NCBI RefSeq assembly: GCF_001194135.2
Contig: NC_068981.1
Coordinates: forward strand, 54,605,747-54,669,746
Length of the DNA stretch: 64,000 nucleotides
DNA from: Octopus bimaculoides
Lineage: Eukaryota
Reading direction: 5' to 3'
The notes under the pieces were generated by a model. The model did no database searches, was not told where the DNA came from, and saw only the letters and a program-made list of their open reading frames with translations. A program made the translations under genes and the position numbers. Of this stretch, positions 15,757 to 37,916 are shown piece after piece. The number at the start of each line of letters is the position of its first letter. Position 1 is the stretch's first letter.

Positions 15757-15798
15757 CCAGACCTAGCTCGCTCGGATTATTACTTGTTTCGAAACATT
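15757..15798 (+). mobile_element. Tiny mariner transposase fragment
   Basis: PDLARSDYYLFR matches the mariner YSPDLAPSDYxLF motif. Confidence 0.5.
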
Positions 15799-18582: not shown

Positions 18583-18870
18583 GTGCAGGTGTAGTTGTGC
18601 GGTAAGAAGCTTGCTTTCTAACCACGTGGTTCCGGGTTCAGTCCCGCTGCATGGTACCTTGGGCAAATGACTTCGTCGGTGGAAACTGAAAGAAGCTTGT
18701 CGTATATATACCTGTGTGTGTATGTGTCTTTGTGTCCGTGTTTGTGCCCAGCCGCAGCTCGACAACCATTGTTGGTGTGTTTACATCCCCAGTAAAAGAG
18801 ACTGATAGAATAAGTACCAGGCTTTACAAAAAATAGTATCACGGTCGATTCATTCGACTAAAAATTCTTC
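18583..18870 (+). mobile_element. tRNA-derived SINE (family C)
   Basis: GGTAAGAAGCTTGCTTTCTAACCACGTGGTTCCGGGTTCAGTCCC head; related copies at ~47212-47590 (+), 54325-54490 (+), 55180-55330 (-), 59305-59550 (+, 3' part) and 62660-62820 (-). Confidence 0.85.
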
Positions 18871-19431
18871 ATGGAAGCAAGTTAAAGATAATCTGAAGGA
18901 ATCGAAAAGAAATGTCTACTTAGACAAGATTTGAACTTAGAAATTGATATGTTTTAATCACCTTCACTACTTTCAAATTAGTTCGAATATCGATAACGTT
19001 CTATTTAAACAACGAGTTTCAAAACATTTCATGCCATTGGAGCTAAGAAATAACATATGCAAAAGAATGACGCGTTTTCATAATGGCATTGTGTGTTTTC
19101 TATATATACCTCTGGGTGGTTGCAATACCATCTGCAGACTTTGTTTTTATAGAAAATCCAATTTGGTAAAGTTCCCCCCTCTTCAAGTGAAACTTATAAT
19201 GAAACCAGCACTGCAAGCTAATGAAACATCTGTCAAATGGATTAGTTGACTATAGACATCGTGTAGTGCTATATTTGACCTAGAGAATCTCTAGTCAGTA
19301 TTCTGACAACCTCATTGACTCAACATTGGCGCATTAACGCATTAAATTATTCAGATTAGTAAGCAATAAATATGAAGAAATATATATTTTCTCACAATTA
19401 TTTCAAAATATCTACATTTCATTAAAAAATT

Positions 19432-19740
19432 TCCTTTACTATCTCATACGTAAAGAACGCGTAAACGAACACACTCACAGGCACCATACACACTCATACA
19501 CAAATTGTGTCGTCATCGTCGTCGTGGTATAAAATGTTCTTTACTATCTCGTACGTATCGAACGCACAGACACTCATATGCAAAATATGTCGTGGTGGTG
19601 ATGGTGGTGGTGGTGGTATAAGATGTCCTTTACTATGTCATATGTAACGAACGCGCAAACACACACTCACAGACACATACACACTCATATACAAAATGTG
19701 TCGTCGTCGTCGTCGTAGTATAAGATGTCCTTTACTATAG
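19432..19740. repeat. ~90-105-bp minisatellite, 3 units plus a partial
   Basis: Unit TCCTTTACTATCTCGTACGTAACGAACGC...CACTCATATACAAAATGTGTCGTCGTCG...TATAAGATG starts near 19433, 19538, 19626 and 19728. Confidence 0.8.
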
Positions 19741-19918
19741 AAAGATTATTTTAGTTAAAATATTATGTTGTTTTAATCGAAATGAAAATAAAAATTACTT
19801 GTTGACACTCGCGGGGTCTAATATTATTATTACCTTGTAAAATTTGATTTGATTTGGTGGAGCCGTTTGAGAATGCATAGGGAACAGACGGACAGACAAA
19901 GAATTTTATATATATAGA
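19741..19918 (-). mobile_element. Helitron-like non-autonomous element 5' end
   Basis: Minus strand TCTATATATATAAAATTCTTTGTCTGTCCGTCTG..., the same style as the plus-strand 29814 TCTATATATATAAATGG...CTGTCTGTCTG. Confidence 0.45.
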
Positions 19919-19919
19919 A

Positions 19920-19951
<32 letters not shown>

Positions 19952-21744
19952 AGTAATTTCAGTATTAGGAATTCTATGCTTGGGATTTGTCACTTTGTTT
20001 TCAAAAACTAATTAAAAACTAATTACACATCATTTAATGCAATGTGTTAATATGAGCTTATGATGGTTTAATTAAATGTATTCTATCATCTCTCCCTTGG
20101 CGGTAATAGTCTGTATTAGTCAGAAGATGGTTTAAGAAGTTAGCTGCTTGAGTTAATTATGTGATAAAATGTTGTCTGGTACTGAAGTGACAATACACCA
20201 AGCATTCTCCAGCCCATAAAGCACACAGAAATAAAAGCAAATATTCATTCATAGATACGAGCATACATCCACGAGCATACATCCATAATTTACTTATACA
20301 AACAATTTATACATGTGTATATGCATACAGAATTTTCTATATTTCTGTTAAATATAAATACTAGCTACAAACCGGTCTTGGTTTAAAAGCATCGTGGTGA
20401 TGCTACGTGGTCCTATGTAACATTCTTGGCAAAATGTTTGTTGTTAACGGCAAGCTTTATTTCTACATGTCTAGACATAACACCGGCTAATTAAACGAAA
20501 CATTCTGGAGATTCGTGGGGCATTTTTATAAAAGGAAGAGAGAAATAGAAAAAAGTCCCCAGTAATAAAATGAAAAAAGAAAAAAGGCAAATTTTCAGTT
20601 ACCAACTTGTTACAACCACTAGTCTACGTACATGCTGTTCCTTTATGTTTATTCTACATTTTTTTTCTTTTTATTTAAGGAATAGAAGAATGGAGCACAA
20701 AGCTTCACTGGTAAAACGAAAGAAAAAAGTGCAAAGTCCATTTCATGTGAAAAAAGACGTTTTGAAAGATATTTAGCCCGTTCAATTTTATTTACTAAAT
20801 GTTATTTAAATCCAGTTTGTCGGTCTGGGATGAATATTTGTGGATTATTGTATAAATATAATCGTATAATTTGAAAAAAAAAAAAATAAGCAGAACATTA
20901 ACATTTATGTAAAAAATCGAAGGTCTAAATCGTGGATCGACAAACTTCCTATATCATTGATTCCCTTCATGAAATCGTTGTTAATTCATTAACCCACCCT
21001 TCATCATGTAAATTTCTAAAATAAAATTTAGAAGTATAATTAATAAAAGAAATCTTGATTTAAAAATAATTCCATCATTTTTTTTATGTGTCCTTACTAC
21101 TTTTTTTTTTAAATAAGAAAAGAAATGGAATTTAATTAAAACACTTAACCAAAATATACAAAGAACAATAAAAATTCGGTCGTATTGATATAGTTGAAAT
21201 ATTTAAAGTGAAATATGCGTTTAGCGAATACAAGTTTGGTTGGAAATTAGAGTTTTAACCTTAAATTAACGTGTTCTTCGAGATTCAATTCAGTACCCTT
21301 AATATTCAAAATAGTTTCAGGTGTTTATCGAGCTCTTGAATAAATAGCCACATAAACCTTTATGGGGAAATATTTACCATTTTACTGGTCTAAATAATTA
21401 CGAGCTGCATATTAAGAAGAAACTAATCAAAACTGATTAAAAAAAGAAAAACCCATCCACCGCCACAAAAAAAAAAAAGAAGGATCAAAATATATAGTGT
21501 AAATAGTTTTAGTGTTATTATAGAGAAAAAATTCATGATAAAAATGTGATTGTCTCACGTATTATCACATTATTTCATTCCGTATTTGACAATTAAATGA
21601 AATATATGAGAAGTGTTAGGTTGCTATCCTTTTATTAAAGATCCCCTGTATCGTGTTACAATGAAGGGGTCGGTTGAAAGGAAAGAATACATAAATAATA
21701 GGCAAGGGTTACATTTCTCCACTTTACATTTCTTGATATTCGAG

Positions 21745-21781
<37 letters not shown>

Positions 21782-22890
21782 ACACACAAATTCGTAGTAT
21801 AAGAAAGATATGGATTCAGAGAATCGTGCGGCTATCACAGAAAGCTCCTCTTACGGACTCGGTTAACAGACCACATAGTAATTCACTACAGAGGAGTGTA
21901 ATGCAGAGTATCCATGCAGCTGAATCCAAATGATGTGATCGATGAAATTATTTCATGAGGAGTATATAAACCATAAAAAATCAAGAGTTATGAGAGATGA
22001 ATACATTAATTTAACCAATTGACATCCTTAGGGTTACGGCTGTTTCGATGTAGTAATAATTTCAGTGTGGAATAAATTTTGGTTACATGCTTGCATGTAA
22101 GCAAAATTTGTCGACTAGGAGGTGTAACTGTGATGTTCTGGTGATCTGATGAACTAGACTTCTTTCTCTGCATTGATTTGTGTGTGTGTGTGTGTGTTTG
22201 TGTGTACACGTGTATGTGTGAGAGAGAGAAATAGAGAATATATATATATATATATATATATANNNNNNNNNNNNNNNNNNNNNNNNNNNNNNNNNNNNNN
22301 NNNNNNNNNNNNNNNNNNNNNNNNNNNNNNNNNNNNNNNNNNNNNNNNNNNNNNNNNNNNNNNNNNNNNNNNNNNNNNNNNNNNNNNNNNNNNNNNNNNN
22401 NNNNNNNNNNNNNNNNNNNNNNNNNNNNNNNNNNNNNNNNNNNNNNNNNNNNNNNNNNNNNNNNNNNNNNNNNNNNNNNNNNNNNNNNNNNNNNNNNNNN
22501 NNNNNNNNNNNNNNNNNNNNNNNNNNNNNNNNNNNNNNNNNNNNNNNNNNNNNNNNNNNNNNNNNNNNNNNNNNNNNNNNNNNNNNNNNNNNNNNNNNNN
22601 NNNNNNNNNNNNNNNNNNNNNNNNNNNNNNNNNNNNNNNNNNNNNNNNNNNNNNNNNNNNNNNNNNNNNNNNNNNNNNNNNNNNNNNNNNNNNNNNNNNN
22701 NNNNNNNNNNNNNNNNNNNNNNNNNNNNNNNNNNNNNNNNNNNNNNNNNNNNNNNNNNNNNNNNNNNNNNNNNNNNNNNNNNNNNNNNNNNNNNNNNNNN
22801 NNNNNNNNNNNNNNNNNNNNNNNNNNNNNNNNNNNNNNNNNNNNNNNNNNNNNNNNNNNNNNNNNNNNNNNNNNNNNNNNNTGTGTGTGT

Positions 22891-22948
<58 letters not shown>

Positions 22949-23880
22949 ATTTCTCAATGCTTACAAATAATGCGGAAAAAATAAATAAATTGTTACCAGG
23001 ATAGTAAAAATTCACATAAATACCAAGGATATAACAGCCTACTTATAAAAGTAGAAATTCCAGGTTTTGGTGAAAAGTTTTTTGTATAACATAGATAAAT
23101 AAATAAATGGAGTTAAACGCAAGTGTTATTCAAATCTTTATACTTCCGACATATCTTTCGAAGAAAATATTGGTATTCCAGAAGGAATAAAATGATGTTA
23201 AACAATGCAATCTTCTCATCAGGGCAAACAAAAAAAAAAAGAGAAACAAAACGCATCAATAAGACATTTTAACGGAATGTGATTACTGCGTATATGATGA
23301 AGGAAACGCTGGTACGTTATTTAAACCGTTAATAGATATAATGTCAAAGGCAATTTATAGAAAGAGAAGGAGGAGGAAGAAAGAAATTAGCAGAAAACTA
23401 CAAGAGGAGAAATATAGTGCGATGGGTGAATGGAATAAAGATTAAAAGTGTGGAAATAAATATATTTAGTGGAAGTGAAATGTAAGAAAACAGTTAAAGG
23501 TCGAATTTTATAGACTGGTAGAAATCACTTATAGGAACTAAAGGTATGTTTTTGCCAATGTTTTCGACGATAAACGTGTTTACAAGAGAATTCTCTGAGA
23601 ACAGGATGTAATACAGCTCATCGTTACAGAGCGAGCAAAAAGATTTACCTTTATCATACGGAAAGGGTCTAGATAGAATATTCCATTCCAAATCAAATTC
23701 TATAACTATAATTATCACTGGAAAATACTCATACGGATTCTATACATGGATATTTACCTTTGGAATGAAACTATACTCCAAGTACTTTTTCTTCCTTGTT
23801 TTTTCTTCTCCGCATCGCTCTCATTTCTTACTGCAAATCTCCTCATACAGATTTAATAATCCTTAACTTCTACTATTACC

Positions 23881-23929
23881 GTCTCCGATGAAGGGATACA
23901 TTGAAATTTCCTTGAAACAGCTGTAAGAC
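23881..23929 (+). ncRNA. Minimal type-I hammerhead ribozyme motif
   Basis: GTCT-CCGATGA-[AGGGA..TCCTT]-GAA-AC-AGCT-GT-A-AGAC: stem I GTCT/AGAC, core with U4C variant, stem II 5 bp, palindromic stem III, GUA cleavage triplet. Confidence 0.72.
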
Positions 23930-24535
23930 ATTTTACATAAAATATAAATTTGTTTATACCATTGATCTCTTTATCTCATTCTTTTTATATATACACACGC
24001 TAATACACGACCCATGTTAAATTCCCCATTCATGTTGCAACCACATCTGGGGCAAAACTAGTCGGTATACAGCACTTACTCGGTATTACCTGTAACATTC
24101 GGGTCTGGTTGACTCCATTACCCACCATAACCCTTATATATATATATATATATTCAACCTACACCCACACACATTGTATAAAATTTGGGCAAAAACCTTG
24201 TGGTATGCAATAGTTAACTTCATGTTTTTCATGTCTGTTTCTTTGCTTCTTTCTTTTTTATTTTCATTATACTTGTGTTTTGTCTGTCACTATTTAGGTT
24301 TAGTCTTGTCTGTAGATTGCTGAAATAGTACACTGCTTTGGATATTCATGCTTGTACAGAATAAAATTAGAGTATGATCTCAAGAATCTCTCCAAAATTA
24401 TTATCTGATGGATAATATTGATTATGCAATATGTTAATTATATCATTTCACCAATGCACTAGGACTGTAACGATGTGTGGAAACAATTATACTAATTTAA
24501 AATGAAGAATATCGTTCAATCCATCCTCTCTTATT

Positions 24536-24537
24536 CA

Positions 24538-24595
<58 letters not shown>

Positions 24596-24790
24596 CCTAC
24601 TTCCCTACCTACCTACCTACCTACCTACCTACCTACCTACCTACCTACCTACCTACCTACTTACCTACCTACCTACCTACATACATACCTACCTACCTAC
24701 CTACCTACCTACCTACATAATACATACATACATATATATGTGTGTGTGTGTATACACACACACATATGCGCGCGCGTGTGTATGTGTGCG
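24536..24790. repeat. Compound microsatellite (CTAT)n-(CTAC)n-(CATA)n-(TG)n
   Basis: Directly visible consecutive tracts. Confidence 0.95.
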
Positions 24791-24809
24791 TGTAGAACGC
24801 TGCTGCCTA

Positions 24810-25035
24810 TAATAATTTGTCTCTGAGATCTTGCCTAAGATTTTCTGTTAAAAACACACCACTCATTGCGAATGACGTCTTGGGATCTTCAGACACTGGT
24901 GTTTCAGCCTGATTTTGTCTCTTCAATGACGAACACCCAAAGGTATTCTGAGCTGAGTGAGCTTCCTACTGAACGAACCCTGTGTTTTTAATACAGAAAG
25001 GCTCTTAAGAGAAGTTTCTCAGAGACAAAATATTA
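24810..25035. mobile_element. MITE with ~50-bp imperfect TIRs
   Basis: Left TAATAATTTGTCTCTGAGATCTTGCCTAAGATTTTCTGTTAAAAACAC versus right GTGTTTTTAATACAGAAAGGCTCTTAAGAGAAGTTTCTCAGAGACAAAATATTA. Confidence 0.7.
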
Positions 25036-25822
25036 CAGCTAGCTCCATTCTAATTCATGATATGCGTATTTTCGCAGATAATTTCTCTAAAACGAGTCAT
25101 TATTTTCTAATGAAATTTCTGTCTTTAAAATAGCTAAGAGTATTGTCATCGAAAGCTATTGTTGTTGTGGTTTAACTGAACGTCAACTCTGATTAGGTAG
25201 ACCTATGATAAAAGGCATTCAAGTCGTAACCAATCTGTCATTTTTTCAGGTAGAGTGCATCTAAATCAATGTGATTTCATGTATCCGTTTTCTTTAGGGT
25301 GGTGTTTGGTGGTAATTTGGCTGTTATTTTTAGCATGTCGACCGCCTTCGTAGAGACTCTCTTGTTGGCTCGTTATGTAATGTTTACTAGAAGAAAAGAA
25401 GTAACACAATTATCAGTTCTATAGAGTTTTTAAAGATTCTGTGTTATCAGTTTTATTTCACGAGAATTGATGGAGTAAACGTTTGATAACAATATTTAGT
25501 TGCTTATACATGGAACGCATATGAGATCTATATTTGGTTGAATTGGTGAGAGTGAAAATGTACAAAGAATTTAGAGAGAAAAAACACTTGTCAGGAATCT
25601 AACAGAAAAATGGGCTGAAGGATTTTCATCTGTACGGTCAGTATAATTAGAACAATACACAGTTATTTGGGTTATATAACAAATTTGCCATTTCAACCAG
25701 GTTTTGTTTTATCCATATTTCGTTTTGATTTGATATCGGGATAAGTTGGGGATAAAGCCTTTCGCCAGAAAGCAGTAGTTTTGCTTTGACTTATTAGATA
25801 TGGTTGCACCTCAGCTGTGATG

Positions 25823-26760
25823 TATTGGGTTTTCTGATAAATTCTTTCGTTTTTTTTTCTATTTATTTTAATCTTTATTTTTCATCAACAGTTTCAGCAA
25901 ATCAATTAGTAATATATTCTCCGTCATTGCTTACGACTTCTTGCTAACGTTCCACTAGCTTGTCAGTGACGGTAGAAATTATCGGATATGGACTCGAAGA
26001 TTTCATCGAACCACGCTTTTAGCTCCACGTCGTTGTTGCACAAAACATCTCGCAGTCTATTTGAGAGAGCGACCGAAAAAGGTAATAATTCGAAGGTACT
26101 ATACCAGGAGACAACGTGGTTTGCAGTAGAACTTTCCAACCGACCTCTTGAATGATATTTTTGGTTGAATTAACGATGTAGAGGCGTGCGTTGTCGTGTT
26201 GAAGAAATACGCCATGTCGCCGGTCGGGTCGTTTTAACTGGATCGAGCTAGCAAACTGGAGGCGATGGAGGAACACTAGAGTTTGTTTCTTTTCGTTCAG
26301 AGCGTGTGGCACCCATGCACCGAGTTTTGAACCTTACCCATCGAGTGAAGGTCACGGGAACGGCATCATGAAAGCATCCTATCCGATGGGCCAATTTCCT
26401 AATCGATTGGTGCAGATCTTCGTGGCTGAGCTCGTTCAATCAATCCTCATCGAACTGAATAAGTCGGCTAGAACGCAGAGAGTCTGCAAGGTCGAATTTT
26501 ACCTCCTTGAGGCGTGAAAACCATTTCAGTAATAGCGCCTTCTCCGTACACAGCATGTCCCGAGCGACTTCGGCAGCTTTGGAACCTTGGTTGAAACTGA
26601 AGAGAAGCAAGTATCGAAAATGTTCATTTTGTTCTACTTGACACTTAATTGTTTTATGTTTCAAAAGAAGTAAAACAAAAAAGTTGTAGAGGAAATATAA
26701 AGCTAAAATAAAACCATCAATCACTGCATTAAAATATTTTTCGCATTAATGGAAATAACA
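25823..26760 (-). mobile_element. mariner transposon, internally deleted
   Basis: CQVEQNEHFRYLLLFSFNQGSKAAE.. (N-terminal HTH), GAWVPHAL (WVPH motif), VFLQHDNAR, SPGIVPSNYYLFRSL; TIR-like TATTGGGTTTTCTGATAA at 25823. Confidence 0.9.
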
Positions 26761-27978
26761 TGGAAAAGAAACAAATGAATTTATTTAACAATCCAACATT
26801 TACAATGAAATTGTTTGAAAGTATGAGCATATTTTCATAATTTCCTTTTGGTGGTGGTTACACGAGATTGGAAAGGAGAATGCACTAATGAGAATTTCCA
26901 TTGTCTTCTCTAGCCTTGCAGAAATATTTGGTGTCAGTTCTGAAAAGTGAGGAAATACTTGATGCATTAAAGGAATGGTATGTCCAAAGCCTGTGTGTCT
27001 TTGCGGCGTGTGTGGGTAGATGAGTGTTGGACGTTGGAATGTACTAAAAACTTTGTCTTTATGCAGTTAATTTAGAGCAAAGTGAAATCCATCCTTCTCG
27101 AAGCTATACTCAGCGGAGGTCTTGAACTGAATACAGTGAGCTAGCAAAATTCTCGTTGATCTTACATTATTGCGGCTGCTTACAATGTTGAACTACATCA
27201 CCCTACAGCATTAATTTAGAGCGAGCTGAACCTGATATTATAATTAAAAGTAGTTTAGTTCAGTTAGGGAAAATATATTTTATACATTAAACACTATTTA
27301 GAAATAATTATACTGAGAGGGAAAACAATCTTTGTGAATGACGCAAATACTGGAGACAACCCCAGTATATTTAAACTTCATTATGACCTCATCAACGAAA
27401 AGTTGACTTCACCGCACTTAAAGTAGTGATGGAGAAGTAAGTAAATGCAGAAGATTGTACACTAGTTGGATTAGAAAAATAGAATTGCTTAAATAAGTGG
27501 TTTGACCGCGGACATAATAGTGGGCTTATCAAAATATTGTCGGGTGACTTCTCACGTGGAATCTATGTTCTGACAATTCAACTATCTACTATTTCTGGAA
27601 ATGTCTGAATATTAAATTTAATAAAAACATATAGGTATTAAGACTTTTTCCTTGAATACCATCCAGAATTATCACTCAATCCGGCAATAAAAGTTCTTTG
27701 CATACTCACGTGCGGATGCACATATACATACACACTTGTATATGCATACTTATGCAGGTAATTATACACCTACGTATAATGTTAGCTCTTTTTCTTACTC
27801 AAAGCCATAAACTTAAATCTCGTTATTTTTCCTATTGTTGTGAATCCGTGTTTGTCAACCTACCTCTTGATTACATTTACAAACATATCACAGCTTATGC
27901 ATTCAGCCAGTCCTTAAAAGATCAACCAACATACTTACCTTTCACTCGACAAACAGCCAATATAACAATTTCCAGCAC

Positions 27979-28036
27979 ATGCTGATGAAACATATATGCG
28001 CTGGGTCAACTCTCTATTGCTTGGCGGTCACATTTG
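27979..28036 (+). CDS. Candidate first coding (signal peptide) exon of the chitin-binding membrane protein
   Basis: ATG...MLMKHICAGSTLYCLAVTF+G then donor GTACGT; phase 1 matches the acceptor at 33045 (G|AT = Asp). The pairing is inferred; three assembly gaps lie in between. Confidence 0.45.
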
Positions 28037-28472
28037 GTACGTGCAAATGACGAAACATGCCACCTCCATTCCAGAATAAATCTGACTATACATCACTCTT
28101 TCATTTTGTATTGCTGCACTGTTGTTCTACCACTCTTGCTTTTGATTCAACTAACTCTTATCTTCACCAAATCTTCACCTAATTTTCTTTCTTTTTCTTA
28201 TCTTTTCTTTCTTTTCTTTCTTTTCTTCTTCTTTTTTTTTTTTTGAATGGCTGCGCTGAGAAACATTCCAAGCAGATATGTAAGATTCATTTGTAGGGCT
28301 TAATGTATGCGTTGGAACGAAAGATATGGGAGTGAAGAAGAAACGATTAATATAGATAAACGTCAAATGTGATAGTAAACGCCTGTCAAAGTTAAAGAGA
28401 TCGAGTGACTCATTCATGATCTTTCCTTTTTGCATTGGAATGATTCTATATAGTTTATATGATGAATCAATA

Positions 28473-28478
28473 ACCACC

Positions 28479-28560
<82 letters not shown>
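28473..28560. repeat. (CCA)n/(CTA)n trinucleotide microsatellite
   Basis: Directly visible. Confidence 0.95.
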
Positions 28561-29207
28561 TTTGTTTGTTCTTGCTTTANNNNNNNNNNNNNNNNNNNNN
28601 NNNNNNNNNNNNNNNNNNNNNNNNNNNNNNNNNNNNNNNNNNNNNNNNNNNNNNNNNNNNNNNNNNNNNNNNNNNNNNNNNNNNNNNNNNNNNNNNNNNN
28701 NNNNNNNNNNNNNNNNNNNNNNNNNNNNNNNNNNNNNNNNNNNNNNNNNNNNNNNNNNNNNNNNNNNNNNNNNNNNNNNNNNNNNNNNNNNNNNNNNNNN
28801 NNNNNNNNNNNNNNNNNNNNNNNNNNNNNNNNNNNNNNNNNNNNNNNNNNNNNNNNNNNNNNNNNNNNNNNNNNNNNNNNNNNNNNNNNNNNNNNNNNNN
28901 NNNNNNNNNNNNNNNNNNNNNNNNNNNNNNNNNNNNNNNNNNNNNNNNNNNNNNNNNNNNNNNNNNNNNNNNNNNNNNNNNNNNNNNNNNNNNNNNNNNN
29001 NNNNNNNNNNNNNNNNNNNNNNNNNNNNNNNNNNNNNNNNNNNNNNNNNNNNNNNNNNNNNNNNNNNNNNNNNNNNNNNNNNNNNNNNNNNNNNNNNNNN
29101 NNNNNNNNNNNNNNNNNNNNNNNNNNNNNNNNNNNNNNNNNNNNNNNNNNNNNNNNNNNNNNNNNNNNNNNNNNNNNNNNNNNNNNNNNNNNNNNNNNNN
29201 NNNNNNN

Positions 29208-29811
29208 GTTTGTGTCTAACAAAGAGAACAAGACGTCCCTGAACCTCAGATGATACGATTGAACAAGTTCGGCAAGCCTTCCAGCGCAGCCCCCAGAAAT
29301 CAGTCAGAATAGCCAGTCGAGAACTTCAGTTCCCATCAACAACTGTTTGGTGCGTCATAAGGAGACCGCTGCAGTTCACACCACACAAACTGCAATTGGT
29401 TCAACAGCTGAAGGACACTGATAAACCAGTTTACCATGAATTTTGCACAGGCGCGTCCTGCTCTCTTTGTCGGGCACAAACACCCCTCCTCCTGAATTTT
29501 GCATGCCAATTCAAAATAGAACGTCTGTCTGGTGCCTGCTTGGTAAACGTTGTACGAAATTTGCGCTGAACACGTGTCCATGATTCAGTTTTAGCGTATT
29601 CTAGGATGCGAAATGACTTCTCTTGTTATGTGAATGACATTACTGGATCTGAAAAGAGACAGAAAACAAAATTGAATTAAATTAAAATTAAATTAACACA
29701 AGAAAACTTGATACTTTTAGATTTTAAATGGTACCAGTTCAATTATGCTACCATTTTTAGTTCATGATATAAGAGTTCTTAGAATGTGACATAGACTTTT
29801 GAAACACTCTG
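29208..29811. mobile_element. Tc1/mariner-superfamily derivative with an inverted duplication of the transposase 5' end
   Basis: Plus: CLTKRTRRP..SDDTIEQVRQAFQRSPQKSVRIASRELQ..PHKLQLVQQLK. Minus from 29640: QEKSFRILEYAKTESWTRVQRKFRTTFTKQAPDRRSILNWHAKF (DUF4817-like HTH). Terminus TA|CAGAGTGTTTCAAAA on the minus strand. Confidence 0.75.
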
Positions 29812-29813
29812 TA

Positions 29814-30420
29814 TCTATATATATAAATGGCAATTTCTATCTGTCTGTCTGTCTGTCTGTATGTATGTATGTTACCATCTTTGCATACATGTTACACCAA
29901 CATCCAGTTCAATAATAGGCTAATTGGATTTCAATAAAAATCTATAATATGCTCTCCAGGAGTGTTGGACGAATTATGATAAAATGAGAAGGTTGCAAAA
30001 AGTATTAGTCTGAGGAAAATGTAGTAACAGAGAGAGGGTGACTTATATCAGTGAAGGTGAGAACAGCGGTGGCAATGGGATGACATGGAAGATCGTTAGA
30101 TCAGAACGAAAGGAAAACGCTGGGAGAAATGTTTTCTTTGAAAAGAGAAAAGATAGCAGAGAGAGACAGAAGACGTCCAGTCCTAGAACGTCGTGCAGGA
30201 AAAAAAGATGGTCACGTGAGGAAAAGAAAGATGGACGATGGTCACGTGTGAGCAACGAGAGAGAGAGAGAGAAAAAGAGAAAGAGAGAGAGAGAGAGAGA
30301 GAGATAGAAAACGGTGAAGGTGAGAAAAGGGAATTAGAGAAGGATGGGGGAGAAAACAGTGTAGAGTAGAGTCGCGTCAAAAAGGTTAAGATAAACCTAT
30401 TTGGAAATGGATGCGTGGCG
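29814..30420 (+). mobile_element. Non-autonomous Helitron-like element (5' end plus AG-rich body)
   Basis: A|TCTATATATATAAA..(CTGT)n start with a purine-rich interior like the reverse complement of 14963-15654. Confidence 0.45.
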
Positions 30421-31138
30421 TTCAATTAAATAATAATATAATATAATATAATATAATATAATATAATACATACACANNNNNNNNNNNNNNNNNNNNNNNN
30501 NNNNNNNNNNNNNNNNNNNNNNNNNNNNNNNNNNNNNNNNNNNNNNNNNNNNNNNNNNNNNNNNNNNNNNNNNNNNNNNNNNNNNNNNNNNNNNNNNNNN
30601 NNNNNNNNNNNNNNNNNNNNNNNNNNNNNNNNNNNNNNNNNNNNNNNNNNNNNNNNNNNNNNNNNNNNNNNNNNNNNNNNNNNNNNNNNNNNNNNNNNNN
30701 NNNNNNNNNNNNNNNNNNNNNNNNNNNNNNNNNNNNNNNNNNNNNNNNNNNNNNNNNNNNNNNNNNNNNNNNNNNNNNNNNNNNNNNNNNNNNNNNNNNN
30801 NNNNNNNNNNNNNNNNNNNNNNNNNNNNNNNNNNNNNNNNNNNNNNNNNNNNNNNNNNNNNNNNNNNNNNNNNNNNNNNNNNNNNNNNNNNNNNNNNNNN
30901 NNNNNNNNNNNNNNNNNNNNNNNNNNNNNNNNNNNNNNNNNNNNNNNNNNNNNNNNNNNNNNNNNNNNNNNNNNNNNNNNNNNNNNNNNNNNNNNNNNNN
31001 NNNNNNNNNNNNNNNNNNNNNNNNNNNNNNNNNNNNNNNNNNNNNNNNNNNNNNNNNNNNNNNNNNNNNNNNNNNNNNNNNNNNNNNNNNNNGAATAGAA
31101 TGGAGGAAGTGGAGCAAGAACACACACGAAAACGAAAA

Positions 31139-31183
31139 GTGCCGCTGAAGAGGTCACAGATAAGTGACGAAAGATTTCCGGAC
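31139..31183 (+). ncRNA. Minimal type-I hammerhead ribozyme motif in a 196-nt repeat unit
   Basis: GT(G)CCG-CTGAAGA-G-GTCAC-AGATAA-GTGAC-GAAA-GATTT-C-CGGAC; core, 5-bp stem II, stem I and UUC triplet present; the 5' half recurs at 31335-31354. Confidence 0.68.
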
Positions 31184-32144
31184 AATGGACATGAGTTAGA
31201 ATAAAATAAGAACAGTGATAAACGAGTGAAGGAAAAATATATAGTGCGTATTTATTTGGCAAAGATTAAAAAAAAAAAAAAAAATAATGACTGTCCCGAA
31301 ATACAATATCCGTTTCAACACACGAAAACGAAAAGTGTCGCTGAAGAGGTCACATATGTGTATATATAATAAAGAAGAAGAAATTGAAGTTAATTCTTTA
31401 TATAATAACATACGCTCACACACATGCTTATGTTATGTTCATATATACACATAGAAAGATCATTTGCTGAGAGATATTTAGAAAACAGTTATGTGCATAT
31501 CTATCTATCGGTCGGTCTGTCTGTCTGTCTGTCTATACACAGACATGCTCGCACACACGTATTGAACCCTCGTCAGACCGTACAGCATGTCTGGTTTAGC
31601 GGATTGTCTGTGTTAACCGATGATAGGAGGCTAATATTGTATAAGTGTACGATGCAGGAAATATATACACTTAACGCTGAACTTGATAATCAATAAAATA
31701 TTTCAGGAAATACCGTAACTTTATAAAAAAGATAAATAACTTTATAAAAGATATAAATATATATTTTATGAAATTCTTTTTTTTTTATTACGGTATGTAA
31801 AAATTAAAAATTAATACTGCAAATTGTTAATTCTATCTACGTGTAGGAAATAACACTTGATGTGGTAGTAGAGGTCGTGTTGACATTTTTCATTATGACT
31901 CAGTAGAGATGCGATGATACTCCACTGATCCCTGTTTCCTACTTGTAGAAGTCTGAGATGTGGCGGAATGTGAAAAAAAAATATCTGTCAATACTTTTGA
32001 AAACTACGTCAATGTTATAGTGTCCAGTTACTCGCTTTTCTATATAGCCCATACCTCGTATTTCGTAAAGAAAACTGTATATACATACACGGCATATTAA
32101 TTTGTTTAAATAATTTGCTTTATCCTAATCATATAAGGAAATCG

Positions 32145-32288
32145 GAGGCGCAATGGCCCAGTGGTTAGGGCAGCGGACTCGCGGTCATAGGATCGCGGTT
32201 TCGATTCCCAGGCGCTGTGAGTGTTTATTGAGCGAAAACACCTAAAGCTCCACGAGGTTCCGGCAGGGGATGGTGGTGAACCCTGCTG
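32145..32288 (+). mobile_element. SINE family B, 3'-truncated at the foldback element
   Basis: GGAGGCGCAATGGCCCAGTGGTTAGGGCAGCGGACTCGCGG... matches 14140-14292; the match stops where the inverted repeat starts. Confidence 0.85.
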
Positions 32289-32577
32289 GGCGATCATTCG
32301 ATAGTAGTGCGCTACTTGTCAACCAGTACCTGCTGATTGTCAACCAGCTGGTCAACATGTCTTTGTTTACATCAATTCGGCAATTTCCGTAAAGAAAGAG
32401 GGAAAGGGCGTTAGTCAGCAGGTAGCAGACAGCAGGTAGCAGACAGCAGGTAGCAGACAGCAGGNNNNNNNNNNNNNNNNNNNNNNNNNNNNNNNNNNNN
32501 NNNNNNNNNNNNNNNNNNNNNNNNNNNNNNNNNNNNNNNNNNNNNNNNNNNNNNNNNNNNNNNNNNNNNNNNNNNNN

Positions 32578-32614
<37 letters not shown>

Positions 32615-32831
32615 TAAAAACACATATCACTTAGAGAGAGAGAGAGAGAGAGAAAGCGAGTGCCTGCTGTCTGCTACCTGCTGACTAAGCCCTTTCCCTC
32701 TTTCTTTACGGAAATTGCCGAATTGATGTAAACAAAGACATGTTGACCAGCTGGTTGACCAGCTGACTACTGGTTGACAATCAGCAGGTACTGGTTGACA
32801 AATAGCGCACTACTATCGAATGATCGCCCAG
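32286..32831. mobile_element. Long near-perfect foldback (MITE/FB-like) element
   Basis: CTGGGCGATCATTCGATAGTAGTGCGCTA...GGTAGCAGACAGCAGG is mirrored by CCTGCTGTCTGCTACC...TAGCGCACTACTATCGAATGATCGCCCAG; inner (TC)n/(AG)n arms; contains a gap. Confidence 0.85.
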
Positions 32832-33044
32832 AAAATATCTTATACTTTAAGATTGTGTACTGAGAGATCCACAATTTTGCTCATTTGAAACATTCAGTAT
32901 CGCACTGCACAGTCAGTAGCTTCATAAAAAGTAACGGATTATAAAAAGAAATTCCAATAAGTTCGAATAATTTGTTTTCTATTAAAATCTTTTGGCAACG
33001 TAGTTTAAAATTTACACATGTGTCCTACAATCGTATTTTGACAG

Positions 33045-33280
33045 ATCTCTGTAGAAAGGTCTCACTACCGTGTCCTGCAGGTGAAAGATTCAGAGATGCA
33101 GTCACATGTCGGGAATACTATGAATGTGGATATGACGGTCAGTTTTTAATCAAGCGACTTTGTCCCGGAAGAAAAGAGTTTGACTCTAAACGTGGTTTCT
33201 GTGTTGTCAGTTCATCATTTAAATGTGAAACTCCAGTAAGATGTCCAAATCTATCTTGGTCAAATAATCTAATCCCAGCG
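33045..33280 (+). CDS. Exon encoding a chitin-binding type-2 (peritrophin-A/CBM14) domain
   Basis: ttttgacag|(D)LCRKVSLPCPAGERFRDAVTCREYYECGYDGQFLIKRLCPGRKEFDSKRGFCVVSSSFKCETPVRCPNLSWSNNLIPA|gtaagg; six Cys spaced CX11CX5CX11CX12CX7C with YYEC and FD motifs typical of CBM14. Confidence 0.85.
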
Positions 33281-33499
33281 GTAAGGTATATATTTATATA
33301 TAAATTTACAATATTAAAATGATTTTCATTGCTTAGTGGAAGCCTTTTTGAATGCTGTACGGAAATATGAAATTTGATAGAATATAATATTTCACATGAT
33401 TTTCCTTGGCTGCTAGATGAAAATATTTAAACAAAATATTAATTTCGTCTAACTCGGCACCAGACCGAATTTTAGCTATGTATTACTTATAACTTGTGA

Positions 33500-33835
33500 A
33501 AGCGCATGGTTCGGTGGTTAGGGCGTCGGACTCACAATCATGAGATAGTGAGTTCGATCCCTGGACCGGGTTGTGCGTGTTGTGTTTTTGAGCAAGATAC
33601 TTTCTTTCATGTTGCTCGAGTTCACTCAGCTGTAGAAATGAGTTGCAACGTCACTGGTGCCAAGCTGTATTGGCCTTTGCCTTTCCATTGGATAACATCC
33701 ATGACGTAGAGAGGGAAGGCTGGTATGCATGGGCGACTGCTGGTCTTCCATAAACAACCTTGCCCAGACTTGTGCCTCGGAGGGTAACTTTCTAGGTGCA
33801 ATCCCATGGTCATTCATGAACGAAGGGGGTCTTTG
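33500..33835 (+). mobile_element. tRNA-derived SINE (family D) in the intron between the CBM14 and TM exons
   Basis: TGGTTCGGTGGTTAGG (A box), GAGTTCGATCCC (B box), TTGAGCAAGATAC..CACTCAGCTGTAGAAATGAGT core; a minus copy lies at ~63300-63520. Confidence 0.82.
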
Positions 33836-33911
33836 ATTTTTTTCAACCGTATCTCTACATCATGAAACTTTAAATCCATTCATGTACTTTTGATATCGTT
33901 GTAATTTCTAG

Positions 33912-34027
33912 GAGAATTCCTTCCCGACTGACTACGTAGTGGGTGGTGTACTTGGATCTCTTGCACTTGTTACCCTGTCAATTCTGATAGTTGCATGTAT
34001 AAGAAAATGGCAGATAAGAAAAAAAAG
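33912..34027 (+). CDS. Transmembrane exon of the chitin-binding protein
   Basis: atttctag|ENSFPTDYVVGGVLGSLALVTLSILIVACIRKWQIRKK+AG|gtaaga; phase 0 matches the previous exon; ~22-residue hydrophobic helix followed by a basic stop-transfer. Confidence 0.85.
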
Positions 34028-34910
34028 GTAAGAATGGAATCTAAAAAAATGTCTTGTACCTAAAACTTTTTTCTGTGTATTTCACCCTTATAACATTCAC
34101 TCTCGATTTTCGCCCACATATAACAGAAAAGGAGTGTAGTATGTTGCAATTTATTGCAAAACATTAACAACATTGTATTAATTTGTCATTATTATAAAGA
34201 AACTTTCGACCTAAAAAATAATATGATACATGGGTATCAATCTAAACCATTTTCTAACTGGTTTTGATAAGCAATGAAATCGTATTTCGATAGCTGTGTG
34301 AATAGTTTTGCTCATAGATATTGTCCTTTTTTTCAATTGCTTCATAATCGGCAACGAGAAACTGGGACTAATAATTCCGGAAGGTCCAGCTCCTAATGAA
34401 ATGTAGAAATATATGTGGAAATCAATCAAGTGATAGAGCGGAAGTGGTTAAGAAAAATGCATTTCAAGTTACTAATCCTTGAAAATTCGTTCTTTATGCG
34501 TTTGACTGAACCCTTTTGGTAAGAGTGGGTGTATACGTGAATGAACGTTAGGATATGTGTGTGTGCACTTCGTGTTGGTAGCAATATACAGTGTTACAGA
34601 TTGATAATGTGATGGTGGGTGCAACAGCTGGTGCGTCACTTCAATTGTCGACCGCACAAGTGGGCGGTAATTTGGAAGTTATTGTACCACGGTAGCCCAT
34701 TACATGTTGGCACAGATCTTCGATCGATCCCAGAACTTGACTGATAAAACCCAAAGTTAACCTCAATGTGATTTGAATTCGTTATATAATGAACTAGAAA
34801 AAACACCGCAAGGTGCTTTAACGGTTCTGCCAACACACCACCCCTTCTAAAAAAATTTTTAATAATAAAAATTTATACAAAATATTTAACTCATTAATTA
34901 TTTATTTCAG

Positions 34911-35031
34911 CCGTCGACGAATTCAACTACGGAAAAATCTTCGTAGCAGGCGTATGGTACCAGTTTTTGATAGTTCCGATTATTTTCACGACAAGATGGC
35001 TCAAATGTACGAAAGAATAAGTAGTAGCCAC
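34911..35031 (+). CDS. Juxtamembrane cytoplasmic exon, 121 nt
   Basis: tttatttcag|C+RRRIQLRKNLRSRRMVPVFDSSDYFHDKMAQMYERISSSH|gtaagt; phase 2 to phase 0 links the TM exon to the last exon. Confidence 0.8.
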
Positions 35032-36487
35032 GTAAGTTTCGAGTGACCAATTGATTTATTTTAACAGTTTTATAGTCATTACAATATGTAAAGCAGGGAT
35101 CATAATGATAACCCACGTCATAAAGTAGATAACACTAGATGATAACATTATTACACATAAAAAGGTCTCAAAATTACCACAAAAGCTCGACTTTGCAATC
35201 CCTAGTGATCTTTTATGGTGAATTTTATGTATAACATTATGGAAACTGCGTACCACGCTTCATTTTCAGAGCCTGGAAATACTTCAGCTTTTACCAGCAG
35301 TTTACAAAGTTCAGTCCAACCTACATTGGAGCACAGATCCATGGCGGTGCTTTTGCTACATACATACAAGCGTGGATGTATATAAATGAAGGCACCTGAG
35401 GTTCTTAGGAAAGATTTGCTCACCAACGTGTCTCACTGATACGCTGTTTCATTTCTTTCTCTTCTTGAATGGTTTCTGCGCTTTTGAACAATCCAGATAC
35501 ATACCTCTTCCTCCGACAGGCTCGCTTGACATACTCATCCCTCTTCTAGTCTTCATTATATGCCTAGCTCCCAGATCTCTCACCAAAACCTTATATGTAT
35601 ATATGTAACACAAATTATCCTCATGCGCACGTAAAACAACGAGAATCAAAAGGATGATGTACATTTTCATCCCTAACACTGTCCTACAGATTTGAACGTG
35701 AATTTGTTAAACGTTTTTGTATTTCACCTTCAGAGAACAGTTTTGAAAGAAGTTTTTTGAAGGCGAAATACGAGAGCATTTACGTAATATATTCACTTTG
35801 AAATCTGCTGGAACGTATTGAAAATGTATATGAACATAACATGCGAATATATATATATATATATANNNNNNNNNNNNNNNNNNNNNNNNNNNNNNNNNNN
35901 NNNNNNNNNNNNNNNNNNNNNNNNNNNNNNNNNNNNNNNNNNNNNNNNNNNNNNNNNNNNNNNNNNNNNNNNNNNNNNNNNNNNNNNNNNNNNNNNNNNN
36001 NNNNNNNNNNNNNNNNNNNNNNNNNNNNNNNNNNNNNNNNNNNNNNNNNNNNNNNNNNNNNNNNNNNNNNNNNNNNNNNNNNNNNNNNNNNNNNNNNNNN
36101 NNNNNNNNNNNNNNNNNNNNNNNNNNNNNNNNNNNNNNNNNNNNNNNNNNNNNNNNNNNNNNNNNNNNNNNNNNNNNNNNNNNNNNNNNNNNNNNNNNNN
36201 NNNNNNNNNNNNNNNNNNNNNNNNNNNNNNNNNNNNNNNNNNNNNNNNNNNNNNNNNNNNNNNNNNNNNNNNNNNNNNNNNNGTGTGTGTGTGTGTGTAT
36301 GCACATACATACATACATACATGCACGCATACATACGTACATACATACATATATACATGCATACATACGTACATACATATACACATACATACACACACAT
36401 GCATATATATATGCATACATACGTACATACATACACGCATACATACGTACATACATACACACATACATACATACATACATACATACA

Positions 36488-36518
<31 letters not shown>

Positions 36519-36579
36519 CCTATGCTTCTTTGTTGCTTGTAAATAATATTTAAATATGGTTGATCTTTTCTTTCTGCAG

Positions 36580-36930
36580 AATATTTCACGTCCATATTAT
36601 CCACCAATGTTTAGACCGATGGCGATGCGACCGCAATACGTCCAACCGTATAGATACCCACATCCTTTTGGAAATTTCGATAGTTTCGGTTCCAGCGATC
36701 CTGCTCTGTACATACCAAATGTTCATAGTGAACAGAGTGATGAACCATCAATTATTACTGGAAGTTTTATCTACCATAGCCCGAACAATCTACCACCGCA
36801 TTTTATCTCTAACCCTAACTACAATGATCCGGATTTATCTTACGACAGTTTCAAGAACGATCACTTTTTCGCAAGCAGCTCTCTTGGAGTCATAAACAAT
36901 ACACTGACAACTCGCCAGCTGCATCTCTGA
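36580..36930 (+). CDS. Terminal exon, Tyr/Pro-rich cytoplasmic tail
   Basis: cttttctttctgcag|NISRPYYPPMFRPMAMRPQYVQPYRYPHPFGNF...SNPNYNDPDLSYDSF...TTRQLHL-TGA; strong acceptor, phase 0; AATAAA occurs downstream (e.g. ~37168). Confidence 0.78.
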   Translation, partial: NISRPYYPPMFRPMAMRPQYVQPYRYPHPFGNFDSFGSSDPALYIPNVHSEQSDEPSIITGSFIYHSPNNLPPHFISNPNYNDPDLSYDSFKNDHFFASSSLGVINNTLTTRQLHL

Positions 36931-37916
36931 TTTCTTTTGTTGTTGTTGATGTCCTTTTTATTAATGAAAATATTATTTTTGTATAAAATGCATTCTTTAT
37001 GTTCATACATAATACATCTGCACTCAGAACATTGCAATCTGCACTTTGTTCCAATTCTTTAAACATATTCAATCTGCATGCGATGTAAGTTACTAAACAG
37101 AACACTGAGCTGCTGTTTTCTCTTTAGAAATTAAGCGATGTAAGAAAAGAAGCGTGACTGTCCAGACAATAAATTTATCCTTTTCATTAATGGCATGTTA
37201 GTTTTGGAGAATTTTTGATTCTTGAGATTATCTCCCCTTCGCGTATGGAAGTTTGTCTTAATTGCCATTTTGATAATTATGATACATCCTACAGAGACAG
37301 AGATAATTTGAATAAATCAAGGATTTATATTGTATGGTATTTATATACCAATATTTATCTATGTTGTTCGAGTACATGCACTGGCCGCTCGAGTTATTTC
37401 TCTGAGCTCATTTTTGTTTAAATTATGCAAATATATTTTCACATTGAATAAATTTAATGCGTACATATGTGCAACTCCGCACTCTGTCTTTCTTTAATTC
37501 AATGTAATGTTGGTTACTATTGGGTAGATTTTTAAATACTTTGCCTAAGCAATCTATTAAAATCGAAAGCTCAAAATAGGTAAATATATTTCAAAGAAAA
37601 GCTTTGAAAATTTAAATTTGCTGATATACATTTACTCTAAAGCTAAATTATTCAACGGCCAATGAAATATATATATTACACAACCACAAGAAAGCCAATC
37701 CAACAATCAATACGATTGTTAGAAGTTATAGCGTATTACTAGTTATTAAGCTTGCGCTAGCCCCAAACTACCTAATAATAGGAACAACTACGGTGCAAAA
37801 TTATTCAGTTCTTTTATTTTTCTAATTATGAAGGCTGAAACAATAAATTACCATTTCCCAAGATGATTTTTCATTGATATGCACCATTACTGGAAATCGT
37901 CTGTATAAAGATAATT

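Follow-up and report, generated by a model that had tools for sequence, protein, structure and literature searches.

Most characterised CBM14 (peritrophin-A) domains bind chitin, molluscs build many chitin structures, and a Trp commonly follows the fifth Cys of such domains. Membrane chitin receptors are known with other folds, namely plant CEBiP/CERK1, human LYSMD3 (LysM) and human FIBCD1 (fibrinogen-like, endocytic). Shisa-like (STMC6) adaptors combine a small Cys-rich ectodomain, one transmembrane (TM) segment and a disordered Pro/Tyr-rich tail, in some cases with a C-terminal PDZ ligand. We describe here a gene of Octopus bimaculoides, found in a 64,000-nt stretch of contig NC_068981.1 (the window, positions 54,605,747 to 54,669,746; all coordinates below are counted from its first letter), whose predicted product can be set beside each of these systems. 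It resembles tachycitin, the insect peritrophins/obstructors, the CHIT1 C-terminal domain, fungal Avr4, Der p 23 and EHEP in the spacing of six Cys, in an aromatic C-x-x-Y-Y-x-C hairpin and in its predicted fold. Secreted CBM14 proteins, however, have signal peptides and often tandem domains, whereas the octopus protein has neither; it differs further in joining its single domain to an extra Cys pair, a TM helix and a conserved cytoplasmic tail. The likeness to CEBiP/CERK1, LYSMD3 and FIBCD1 is conceptual, in that the octopus protein may likewise recognise chitin through a small extracellular module, mounted on a single-pass protein whose cytoplasmic part drives signalling or endocytosis; their binding folds are unrelated to CBM14, and the octopus protein has no kinase domain. 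The Shisa-like layout of Cys-rich ectodomain, one TM segment and motif-bearing disordered tail is also similar, but the ectodomain there is of the Shisa type rather than the CBM14 fold. Pfam Shisa gave no match to the octopus protein at E-values up to 10, and no conserved PPxY/LPxY ([PL]PxY) was found in the tails of the octopus protein family, the only match being LPYY in Lottia.

The locus is a real, expressed five-exon protein-coding gene with a main mRNA of ∼2.5 kb (Table 1), and both gene and splicing are backed by RNA contigs and loose ends from five runs of organism A and one run of a second species. The initial annotation had proposed four downstream exons, at 33045-33280, 33912-34027, 34911-35031 and 36580-36930, and these stand, with GT..AG introns and in-frame splicing: the joints 33280^33912 and 34027^34911 are each crossed by one spliced RNA contig per run in X1, X2 and X3, while 35031^36580 is seen in the loose end CAAATGTACGAAAGAATAAGTAGTAGCCAC preceding 36580 in the same three runs, and also within the single 2566-nt contig of X1. 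Positions 18-1177 of that contig correspond to 1507-2667 and lead into exon 2, and its positions 1651-2545 correspond to 36580-37474, after which comes a poly(A) loose end; this places the poly(A) site at ∼37474, with an AATAAA at 37447. Contig depth is low, about 5-9x. The assembly gaps, among them 28580-29207, 30477-31092 and 32465-32577 in intron 1 and 35866-36282 in intron 4, are intronic. Because every junction is spanned by one contig, they hide no exon of the main isoform, which had been a stated concern.

The joint 2667^33045 between exons 1 and 2 was read directly in X1 and X16 (organism A) and in X4 (second species), and is deduced in X2 from a 235-nt contig that stops at 2667 with 43 nt remaining; a loose end finishing in GGGCAATGTACTCAAATGATATTC precedes 33042 in X16 and X4. 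Exon 1 has the donor CAG^gtaagt, an in-frame stop two codons 5′ of its ATG, and a leader of at least 1139 nt that holds 15 upstream ATGs, including one uORF of 70 codons; its true 5′ end may lie further upstream than 1507. Identity with Octopus sinensis over 1400-2200 is 92-98%, as compared to 67-90% in the flanks. Besides transposable-element fragments, intron 1 contains an antisense transcript, the rejected 27979 exon discussed below and an alternative 5′ exon, for which the locus alignment gave no O. sinensis counterpart. The alternative exon occupies positions 1-76 of a 934-nt contig in X3 that continues from 33045 at position 77; since it has an in-frame TAA at 31219-31221 with no later ATG, this isoform is unable to encode the ectodomain.

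Table 1. Coordinates of the gene, its exons and the encoded features within the window
Feature	Position	Strand	Remarks
Exon 1	1507..2667	+	5′ leader, then ATG at 2646 and 22 nt of CDS (MYSNDIP + G)
Intron 1	2668..33044	+	30.4 kb; five assembly gaps
Alternative non-coding 5′ exon	31168..31243	+	spliced to 33045; 5′ end undefined; X3
Exon 2	33045..33280	+	entire predicted ectodomain, aa 8-86; RNA contigs
CBM14 core, 6 Cys (predicted)	33071-33226 (aa 17-68)	+	within exon 2
NLS sequon	33248-33256	+	exon 2
Exon 3	33912..34027	+	stalk end (FPTD), TM helix, start of basic juxtamembrane run
TM helix (predicted)	33933-34001 (aa 94-116)	+	exon 3
Exon 4	34911..35031	+	remainder of basic run, R-[LM]-V-P-V-F motif, short helix with YERI
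R-[LM]-V-P-V-F motif	34954-34980	+	exon 4; family alignment
Exon 5	36580..37474	+	tail CDS, stop codon 36928-36930, then 3′ UTR
Motif 1, EPSIITGSFIYHSPNNLPPH	36742-36801	+	exon 5
NPNY, octopus-only	36811-36822	+	exon 5
Motif 2, LSYDSFKNDH	36835-36864	+	exon 5
C-terminal LHL	36919-36927	+	exon 5

The protein collection lists no entry encoded by the window itself, and the sole near relative there is ‘uncharacterized protein LOC118762384 [Octopus sinensis]’, in keeping with the initial description of the gene as uncharacterised; under the orthologue locus names the literature yielded no paper, name or function. This orthologue is likewise 281 aa long; it shares 99% identity with the window protein, also begins MYSNDIP and is divided over five exons in the same way. 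Between the two Octopus species, in both of which the ORF is intact, identity reaches 98.1% in the CDS, as compared to 87-93% for introns, and its 12 synonymous and 4 non-synonymous differences (dN/dS 0.088, Fisher p 6e-6) point to clear coding constraint. A phmmer search over 1.84 billion representatives returned 20 matches, and those with TM segment and tail were, where named, all molluscs (Liolophura, Patella, four species of Haliotis, Pomacea and Batillaria); a profile search added Lottia and Littorina. On these comparisons we report a previously undescribed family of cephalopods, chitons and several gastropod lineages. Its full-length members, at 260-322 aa, have the layout of the octopus protein, that is, a short N-terminus, an 8-Cys domain, a stalk ending FPT[DE], the TM segment, a basic stretch and the tail, and they are not fragments of a larger known protein, an outcome that had been raised against the gene model. 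The octopus domain order and invariant tail motifs recur in Patella SNE40_014816, Lottia LOTGIDRAFT_236482, Haliotis LOC124146514, Pomacea LOC112572819 and Liolophura LOC135481708. Several gastropod models have most or all of the ectodomain missing; these may be truncated predictions or real isoforms, and the core function may therefore not require the ectodomain.

Pfam, Cys spacing, phmmer and the AF2 fold together indicate that the ectodomain is a divergent 8-Cys peritrophin-A/CBM14 domain. The initial reading of a CBM14-like domain with two extra Cys, an NLS sequon, a TM segment and a basic stretch holds as described. The core residues Cys17, 29, 35, 47, 60 and 68 give C-x11-C-x5-C-x11-C-x12-C-x7-C, within the CBM14 spacing C-x11-24-C-x5-6-C-x9-19-C-x10-16-C-x4-14-C, and are flanked by the additional Cys10 and Cys74. 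Cys29, 35, 47 and 60 (numbered as core Cys 3-6) are invariant across the family and the outgroup CBM14 repeats, and core Cys1 is gapped or substituted in two outgroup rows. With Pfam CBM_14 (PF01607), the proposed check of the domain, the octopus ectodomain scores 21.0 bits (E=3.6e-4), just short of the gathering threshold of 22.1, which is passed by the chiton orthologue (23.8 bits) and by a second cephalopod-like sequence (25.7); the Patella, Lottia and Haliotis orthologues gave no match to this model. Moreover, phmmer matched multi-CBM14 proteins at E-values of 1e-15 to 1e-10. In the AF2 model of exon 2 the mean pLDDT is 67, with 75-83 in the core, and 9 of the 10 best Foldseek matches in the PDB are CBM14 structures, at probabilities of 0.87-1.00 and E-values of only 0.02-0.3. 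The best matches are Der p 23, EHEP, the CHIT1 CBM14 domain (rmsd 1.3 A over 46 columns), Blo t 12, Avr4 and tachycitin. Confidence in the fold is moderate because the alignment is shallow.

The best-conserved portions of the protein are predicted to be cytoplasmic: conservation between octopus and gastropods rises from ∼30% in the ectodomain to 67-71% in motif 1 and 82-91% in motif 2. In the AF2 model the tail of ∼140 aa is mostly disordered, and it carries the conserved blocks R[LM]VPVF, PSIIxGSFxYHxPxNLPPH, SYDSFKNxH, STL and a terminal hydrophobic-x-hydrophobic, with 20 invariant residues in the family alignment; little or no variation is seen at Y230, H231, P233, Y253, D254, S255 and F256. 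These motifs matched no described family in Pfam or the PDB. The octopus protein does have NPNY, YERI, YDSF and the terminal LHL as initially listed, and conservation of the Tyr motifs, which had been proposed as a check, is borne out in part. By pattern match, YDSF occurs in 14/14 family members (the window protein and 13 relatives) and YHxP in 13/14, but YERI, which falls in a short predicted helix (151-161), is loosely conserved, and NPNY is confined to the two Octopus sequences, where it aligns to a variable linker, with NPxY in 0/12 family members outside Octopus. The hydrophobic C-terminus fares better, being LHL in Octopus, MYL in Patella, FGL in Lottia and FYL in Haliotis, Pomacea, Littorina, Batillaria and others, and the hydrophobic-x-hydrophobic end is kept in every complete-tail member except the fragment P0011 (...QHPQF). 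As a pattern it matches the class II PDZ ligand of the initial annotation, but it would suit a di-hydrophobic ER-export signal just as well.

Hydropathy reaches a Kyte-Doolittle 19-mer maximum of 2.53 at aa 98-116, and the AF2 model has a helix over residues 92-137, where pLDDT reaches 98. As read from the sequence, the 15-aa flanks of the TM segment carry charges of -2 on the N side and +8 on the C side, and the basic juxtamembrane run (in octopus RKWQIRKKSRRRIQLRKNLRSRR, ending at 34953) is conserved in all orthologues. These features fit a single-pass membrane protein, which by the positive-inside rule would be oriented N-out/C-in (type I or type III), and the initial architecture of CBM14-type ectodomain, single TM pass and Tyr/Pro-rich tail with conserved short motifs is retained. 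The octopus protein lacks the cleavable N-terminal signal peptide of a classical type I protein: its RNA-supported N-terminus shows none, nor did visual inspection reveal one in any of the orthologue models.

We consider it reasonably probable that this five-exon gene encodes a 281-aa membrane-tethered adaptor or receptor with an N-out signal anchor, a CBM14-fold ectodomain and a conserved tail. The TM segment would serve as a reverse (N-out, C-in) signal anchor that translocates the disulfide-dependent domain to the lumen or the cell surface; before this step the domain could remain unfolded in the reducing cytosol. On the outer side the ectodomain would bind an extracellular ligand, the fold making chitin or chito-oligomers the first guess, and inside the conserved tail peptides would recruit cytosolic partners. 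Judging by pattern, YHxP and YDSF could be used in tyrosine-based sorting or SH2-type recognition, and the C-terminus could act as a PDZ-type or export signal. The protein would in this way link trafficking or signalling to an extracellular matrix or ligand, rather than being a secreted structural peritrophin.

It is uncommon for an N-terminal domain of 93 aa to be translocated with no signal peptide, and the initial annotation had instead proposed a classical type I receptor of ∼293 aa that takes its signal peptide from an exon at 27979-28036. That reading, which we now regard as extremely improbable, was right about the four downstream exons and their junctions but not about the first exon; the RNA-supported ORF is 281 aa and starts MYSNDIPDLC.... 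The 27979-28036 exon does offer an ATG, a mildly hydrophobic 19 aa and a GT donor in the correct phase. Yet no plus-strand RNA carries the join 28036^33045 in any of the four runs showing the sequence that precedes exon 2 (three runs from organism A and one from organism B), all of which favour the exon ending at 2667; in O. sinensis a 4-nt insertion within the counterpart shifts the frame into a stop; and the segment is covered by an exon, 27939-28177, of a spliced minus-strand contig in X3, which also explains its conservation. A scan 5′ of exon 2 moreover found 35 other ATG...GT, phase-1 candidate exons that are more hydrophobic, so that this one is not beyond chance. The exon was rejected as lying outside the gene's mRNA, and the model built on it is refuted for the sampled tissues, although a signal-peptide exon employed in an unsampled tissue may have been overlooked. 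The missing signal peptide also enters into a different reading, in which the locus is transcribed as a decaying or regulatory RNA and makes little or no functional protein. The 1.1-kb leader, whose upstream ATGs argue for weak or regulated translation, fits here, as do the 70-codon uORF, the low contig depth and the X3 isoform. We nonetheless hold this to be very unlikely: the low dN/dS and the ORF kept intact in two Octopus species speak against it, and tail residues that stay invariant from chitons to gastropods and cephalopods would be unexpected without translation.

The label ‘chitin-binding’ in the initial annotation goes further than the fold that suggests it, and the ectodomain is a putative chitin binder. 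Der p 23 and Aplysia EHEP, the two CBM14-fold proteins that it matches best in structure, are reported as non-chitin-binding, and chitin-binding residues are unconserved even between CBM14 domains that do bind chitin (PMC10619976). It is possible, if somewhat doubtful, that the ligand is a polyphenol or tannin (cf. Aplysia EHEP), a protein or another glycan, or that the ectodomain is a mere folded cap, with TM segment and tail as the functional unit in the manner of a transmembrane adaptor. Either view would fit the absence here of the Trp after Cys5, an ectodomain that is the least conserved region (tail motifs 70-90%), gastropod ectodomains that fall short of Pfam CBM_14, and the Haliotis, Pomacea and Littorina models without most of the ectodomain. 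In favour of chitin are the binding habit of most characterised CBM14 domains, the many chitin structures of molluscs, and the aromatic signature C-x-x-Y-Y-x-C...CP-x-G-x-x-F, which is kept in cephalopod and chiton members.

The gene is transcribed as five exons with a 30-kb first intron. The initial annotation had spliced five segments, with canonical GT..AG junctions, into a frame that stays open for 293 codons; four of its exons are borne out by RNA joints, whereas the first, a putative signal-peptide exon at 27979-28036, is wrong. The nearest protein, "uncharacterized protein LOC118762384 [Octopus sinensis]" (P0001, 281 aa), is 99% identical over 94% of the query, and its N-terminus reads MYSNDIP, as compared to MLMKHICAGSTLYCLAVTF in the initial model. 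MYSNDIP is encoded at 2646-2667, 30 kb upstream of the region first annotated, and is followed by a gtaagt donor. A single contig from run X1 of the source organism carries all five exons of the table and terminates in a poly(A) loose end, with AATAAA 27 nt before it. Two of the joints (33280^33912 and 34027^34911) are carried by X1 and by two further runs, X2 and X3; for 35031^36580, all three runs show exon-4 sequence hanging before 36580, and 2667^33045 is supported in X1, X2, and X16 as well as in X4, a run from a second species. X15 continues straight across exon borders, behaving like genomic DNA, and in X20, a 2026 raw-read run of which 6% was read, the exons had no coverage.

Features in the window, with strand and supporting evidence
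Feature	Position	Strand	Evidence or remark
Gene, exons 1 to 5	1507-2667, 33045-33280, 33912-34027, 34911-35031, 36580-37474	+	single 2566-nt X1 contig (public RNA assembly)
Alternative non-coding 5' exon	31168-31243	+	spliced to exon 2, X3 only
Antisense spliced transcript within intron 1	26798-26939, 27939-28177	-	one 381-nt X3 contig joining 27939 to 26939
SINE-like repeat, tRNA-like head (...GGTTCGATCCCTGGACC...)	33492-33861		intron 2
Transposon fragment, LTR-type RT-RNase H	9227-9862	+	E=3e-8
Transposon fragment, Tc1/mariner transposase HTH	40321-40767	+	E=1e-6
Transposon fragment, reverse transcriptase with PHD finger	48897-49574	+	
Mariner-like ORF remnant	26022-26333	-	no Pfam match
Mariner-like ORF remnant	29243-29566	+	no Pfam match

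The window is eukaryotic, AT-rich (GC 35%), and has nine N gaps. The initial annotation had allowed for exons hidden in gaps, but the four flagged gaps are intronic (three in intron 1, one in intron 4) and hold no exon of the X1 isoform, since RNA contigs and loose ends show the joints. Microsatellites flank gaps in the window: (CCA/TAC)n at 28468-28579 before the gap at 28580, (TA)n at 35850-35865 before that at 35866, and (GT)n plus (CATA)n at 36283-36520 after the gap end at 36282. The assembly gaps at 28580 and 35866 are probably due to these flanking repeats.

The rejected first exon is unsupported by spliced RNA, and its frame is lost in O. sinensis. No contig in the RNA assemblies joins 28036 to 33045; the X3 contig over this stretch is spliced across a CT..AC gap, i.e. 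a GT..AG intron of the minus strand. A 4-nt insertion (AACT) in the O. sinensis counterpart changes the phase, and a stop is reached. In a sequence scan upstream of exon 2, 35 other ATG-to-GT segments have the right phase and a more hydrophobic core, and chance alone yields "signal-peptide exons" of this kind at a rate of roughly one per kilobase. The antisense exon that covers the surrounding stretch explains why it is so well conserved (27900-28200 is ∼96% identical to O. sinensis, exceeding the intron background). No obvious ORF is present in the antisense transcript, possibly a lncRNA. There is a practical warning here: the first intron is 30 kb long, the N-termini of most orthologue models are doubtful, and what looked like a plausible signal-peptide exon was an ORF that arose by chance within an antisense transcript.

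The window is colinear with the O. sinensis locus, with all splice sites identical; its intron identity of 87-93% places it in another Octopus species. Identity over the 846-nt CDS is 98.1%, the differences being 12 synonymous and 4 non-synonymous; the resulting dN/dS of 0.088 (Fisher p 6e-6) indicates purifying selection on the gene at the protein level. Two features nonetheless raise doubt about a real protein, the N-terminus without a signal peptide and a 5' leader of at least 1139 nt that is rich in upstream ATGs (15); conservation of the leader with O. sinensis exceeds that of its flanks.

A word-indexed homologue search recovered the O. sinensis orthologue alone. With that orthologue as query, phmmer returned 20 matches among 1.84 billion cluster representatives; a profile search with the transmembrane (TM) segment and tail added further members, and a profile of the ectodomain retrieved nothing at E<=0.001. 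All named proteins that share the TM segment and tail are molluscan and "uncharacterized", from the chiton Liolophura sinensis, the limpets Patella caerulea and Lottia gigantea, four Haliotis species (abalone), and the caenogastropods Pomacea, Littorina, and Batillaria; within these searches, no bivalve, heterobranch, or non-mollusc protein with this TM segment and tail was among the named matches. The remaining phmmer matches are generic multi-CBM14 proteins aligned through the ectodomain alone. Neither the window nor the O. sinensis locus contains a paralogous exon. The label "uncharacterised" given initially is thus borne out for the O. sinensis gene model and every named relative, and literature searches returned no paper mentioning any family member by locus name; those directed at membrane-anchored CBM14 proteins gave no account of a CBM14-TM-tail layout. 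What was already known is an unnamed O. sinensis gene model; what is new is a peritrophin-A protein turned single-pass membrane protein, with a conserved cytoplasmic cassette of its own.

In the family alignment, the common plan runs from C-x6-C through a six-Cys core, C-(P)PP-x-CP, and a stalk ending FPT[DE] to the TM helix and a basic run; it continues with R[LM]VPVF-x-[DE]P, a short helix, a variable Tyr/Pro/His-rich linker, a first tail block (PSIIxGSFxYHxPxNLPPH), and a second variable linker, and closes with a second tail block ([LV]SYDSFKN[DE]H), then STL and a hydrophobic-x-hydrophobic C-terminus. Between octopus and gastropod sequences, identity is ∼30% for the ectodomain, as compared to 67-71% over the first tail block and 82-91% over the second. 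It is therefore the cytoplasmic motifs, far better conserved than the ectodomain, that form the family signature. The tail motifs singled out initially fared unequally. YDSF is invariant across the family, and the hydrophobic C-terminus is present as LHL, MYL, FGL, or FYL in all complete tails except the unnamed fragment P0011 (...QHPQF). YERI is kept loosely, as Y/F-x-x-hydrophobic within the predicted helix. NPNY occurs only in octopus, and we accordingly rejected membership among NPxY receptors; Shisa-like membership was rejected on Pfam and tail-motif checks. AF2 predicts the tail to be disordered except for one short helix. The tail has no Pfam or PDB match, and PDB sequence searches with the protein and the tail profile gave nothing meaningful.

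Several abalone NCBI models (P0005, P0022, P0023, and P0025) include isoforms with alternative first exons in which the CBM14 domain is wholly absent and the TM segment and tail are kept, and the Pomacea and Littorina models begin within the end of the CBM14 domain. Either these ectodomain-less gastropod models are real isoforms, or 5' exons have been systematically missed.

The proposed CBM14 domain falls just short of the Pfam cutoff in octopus (CBM_14, 21.0 bits versus 22.1), exceeds it in the chiton (23.8) and in a second cephalopod-like sequence (25.7), and has no score in limpets or abalone. The Cys spacing matches the peritrophin-A pattern, with an extra pair (Cys10, Cys74) that is also found in P0018, an unrelated two-domain protein. 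An AF2 model of exon 2 (core pLDDT 75-83) has as best PDB matches Der p 23, Aplysia EHEP, the CHIT1 chitin-binding domain (rmsd 1.3 A), Blo t 12, Avr4, and tachycitin, all of them CBM14 folds, with E-values that are modest, as expected for 50 residues. Membership in the CBM14 fold is thus well supported by Pfam scores, Cys spacing, and the model's matches. Chitin binding by the ectodomain is putative and not well supported. According to the EHEP structure paper (PMC10619976), the fold does not conserve the residues critical for chitin binding, and neither EHEP nor Der p 23 binds chitin.

The single-pass architecture proposed initially, with CBM14 ectodomain, TM segment, and tail, holds. One strong hydrophobic helix spans aa 94-116, with a charge of -2 in its N-terminal flank and +8 in its C-terminal flank; in a full-length AF2 model from a 12-sequence alignment (mean pLDDT 55), only this helix was usable, and the model was left out of the fold search. 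No signal peptide is evident in the octopus N-terminus or, by inspection, in any orthologue model, and a classical type I receptor was rejected for this reason. By the positive-inside rule, the flank charges predict that the TM segment serves as a signal anchor with the N-terminus outside ("type III" arrangement). An ectodomain that needs four disulfides to fold would not do so in the cytosol and would therefore still be open to translocation, and an N-terminal domain unfolded until translocated is consistent with what is established for signal-anchor proteins.

To our knowledge, CBM14/peritrophin-A domains occur almost only in secreted matrix, gut-lining, shell, and allergen proteins and in chitinases, whereas the octopus domain is fused to a TM helix and a cytoplasmic tail. 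Judged by their sequences, the invariant tail blocks look like docking peptides, and on that basis we interpret the protein as a membrane-tethered adaptor or receptor with putative ligand and partners. A more far-reaching reading, which we consider rather unlikely, would make this the first receptor-type use of CBM14: the family would be mollusc-wide and would insert N-out with no signal peptide, the ectodomain would detect or grip chitin, either nascent or ingested, at the surface of the cell, and the invariant tail cassette (both blocks plus the terminal Phi-x-L) would be a new docking module through which chitin structures, such as those of the radula, beak, gut lining, or shell field, are tied to endocytosis or to signalling by tyrosine kinases. 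Presence in chitons, gastropods, and cephalopods, with no named bivalve in these searches, would fit a link to the buccal/radular apparatus; the lack of heterobranch gastropods among the matches weakens it. The interest of the adaptor or receptor reading lies in a CBM14 protein whose tail has been conserved better than its ectodomain over the whole age of the chiton, gastropod, and cephalopod lineages. Should the ectodomain bind chitin, the family would be a candidate for the means by which epithelia of molluscs detect or hold on to chitin that they secrete or eat, for which we know of no mollusc membrane receptor; if it does not, the invariant tail cassette would still be an undescribed docking module.

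The alternative 5' exon has an in-frame TAA and cannot supply the start codon; at most, the X3 isoform could yield a product that lacks the ectodomain and begins at Met140. This exon adjoins repeats, and its stretch is without counterpart in the alignment to the O. sinensis locus. The relative P0003 (Logan contig ERR3431203; L002 194-260), 68% identical in the ectodomain, has its start codon (MNSDSIFKFT-DLC) and its CBM14 domain in one exon. In octopus, the final 24 nt of intron 1 (33020-33044) read in frame V-S-Y-N-R-I-L-T before DLC; on this weak similarity, they may be the remnant of an earlier start within exon 2 whose role the distant exon 1 took over. Among the repeats, the tRNA-like SINE contains no tRNA gene called by ARAGORN. 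Its RNA word depth reaches ∼18 000x, with many variant copies, indicating that the family is highly expressed or abundant.
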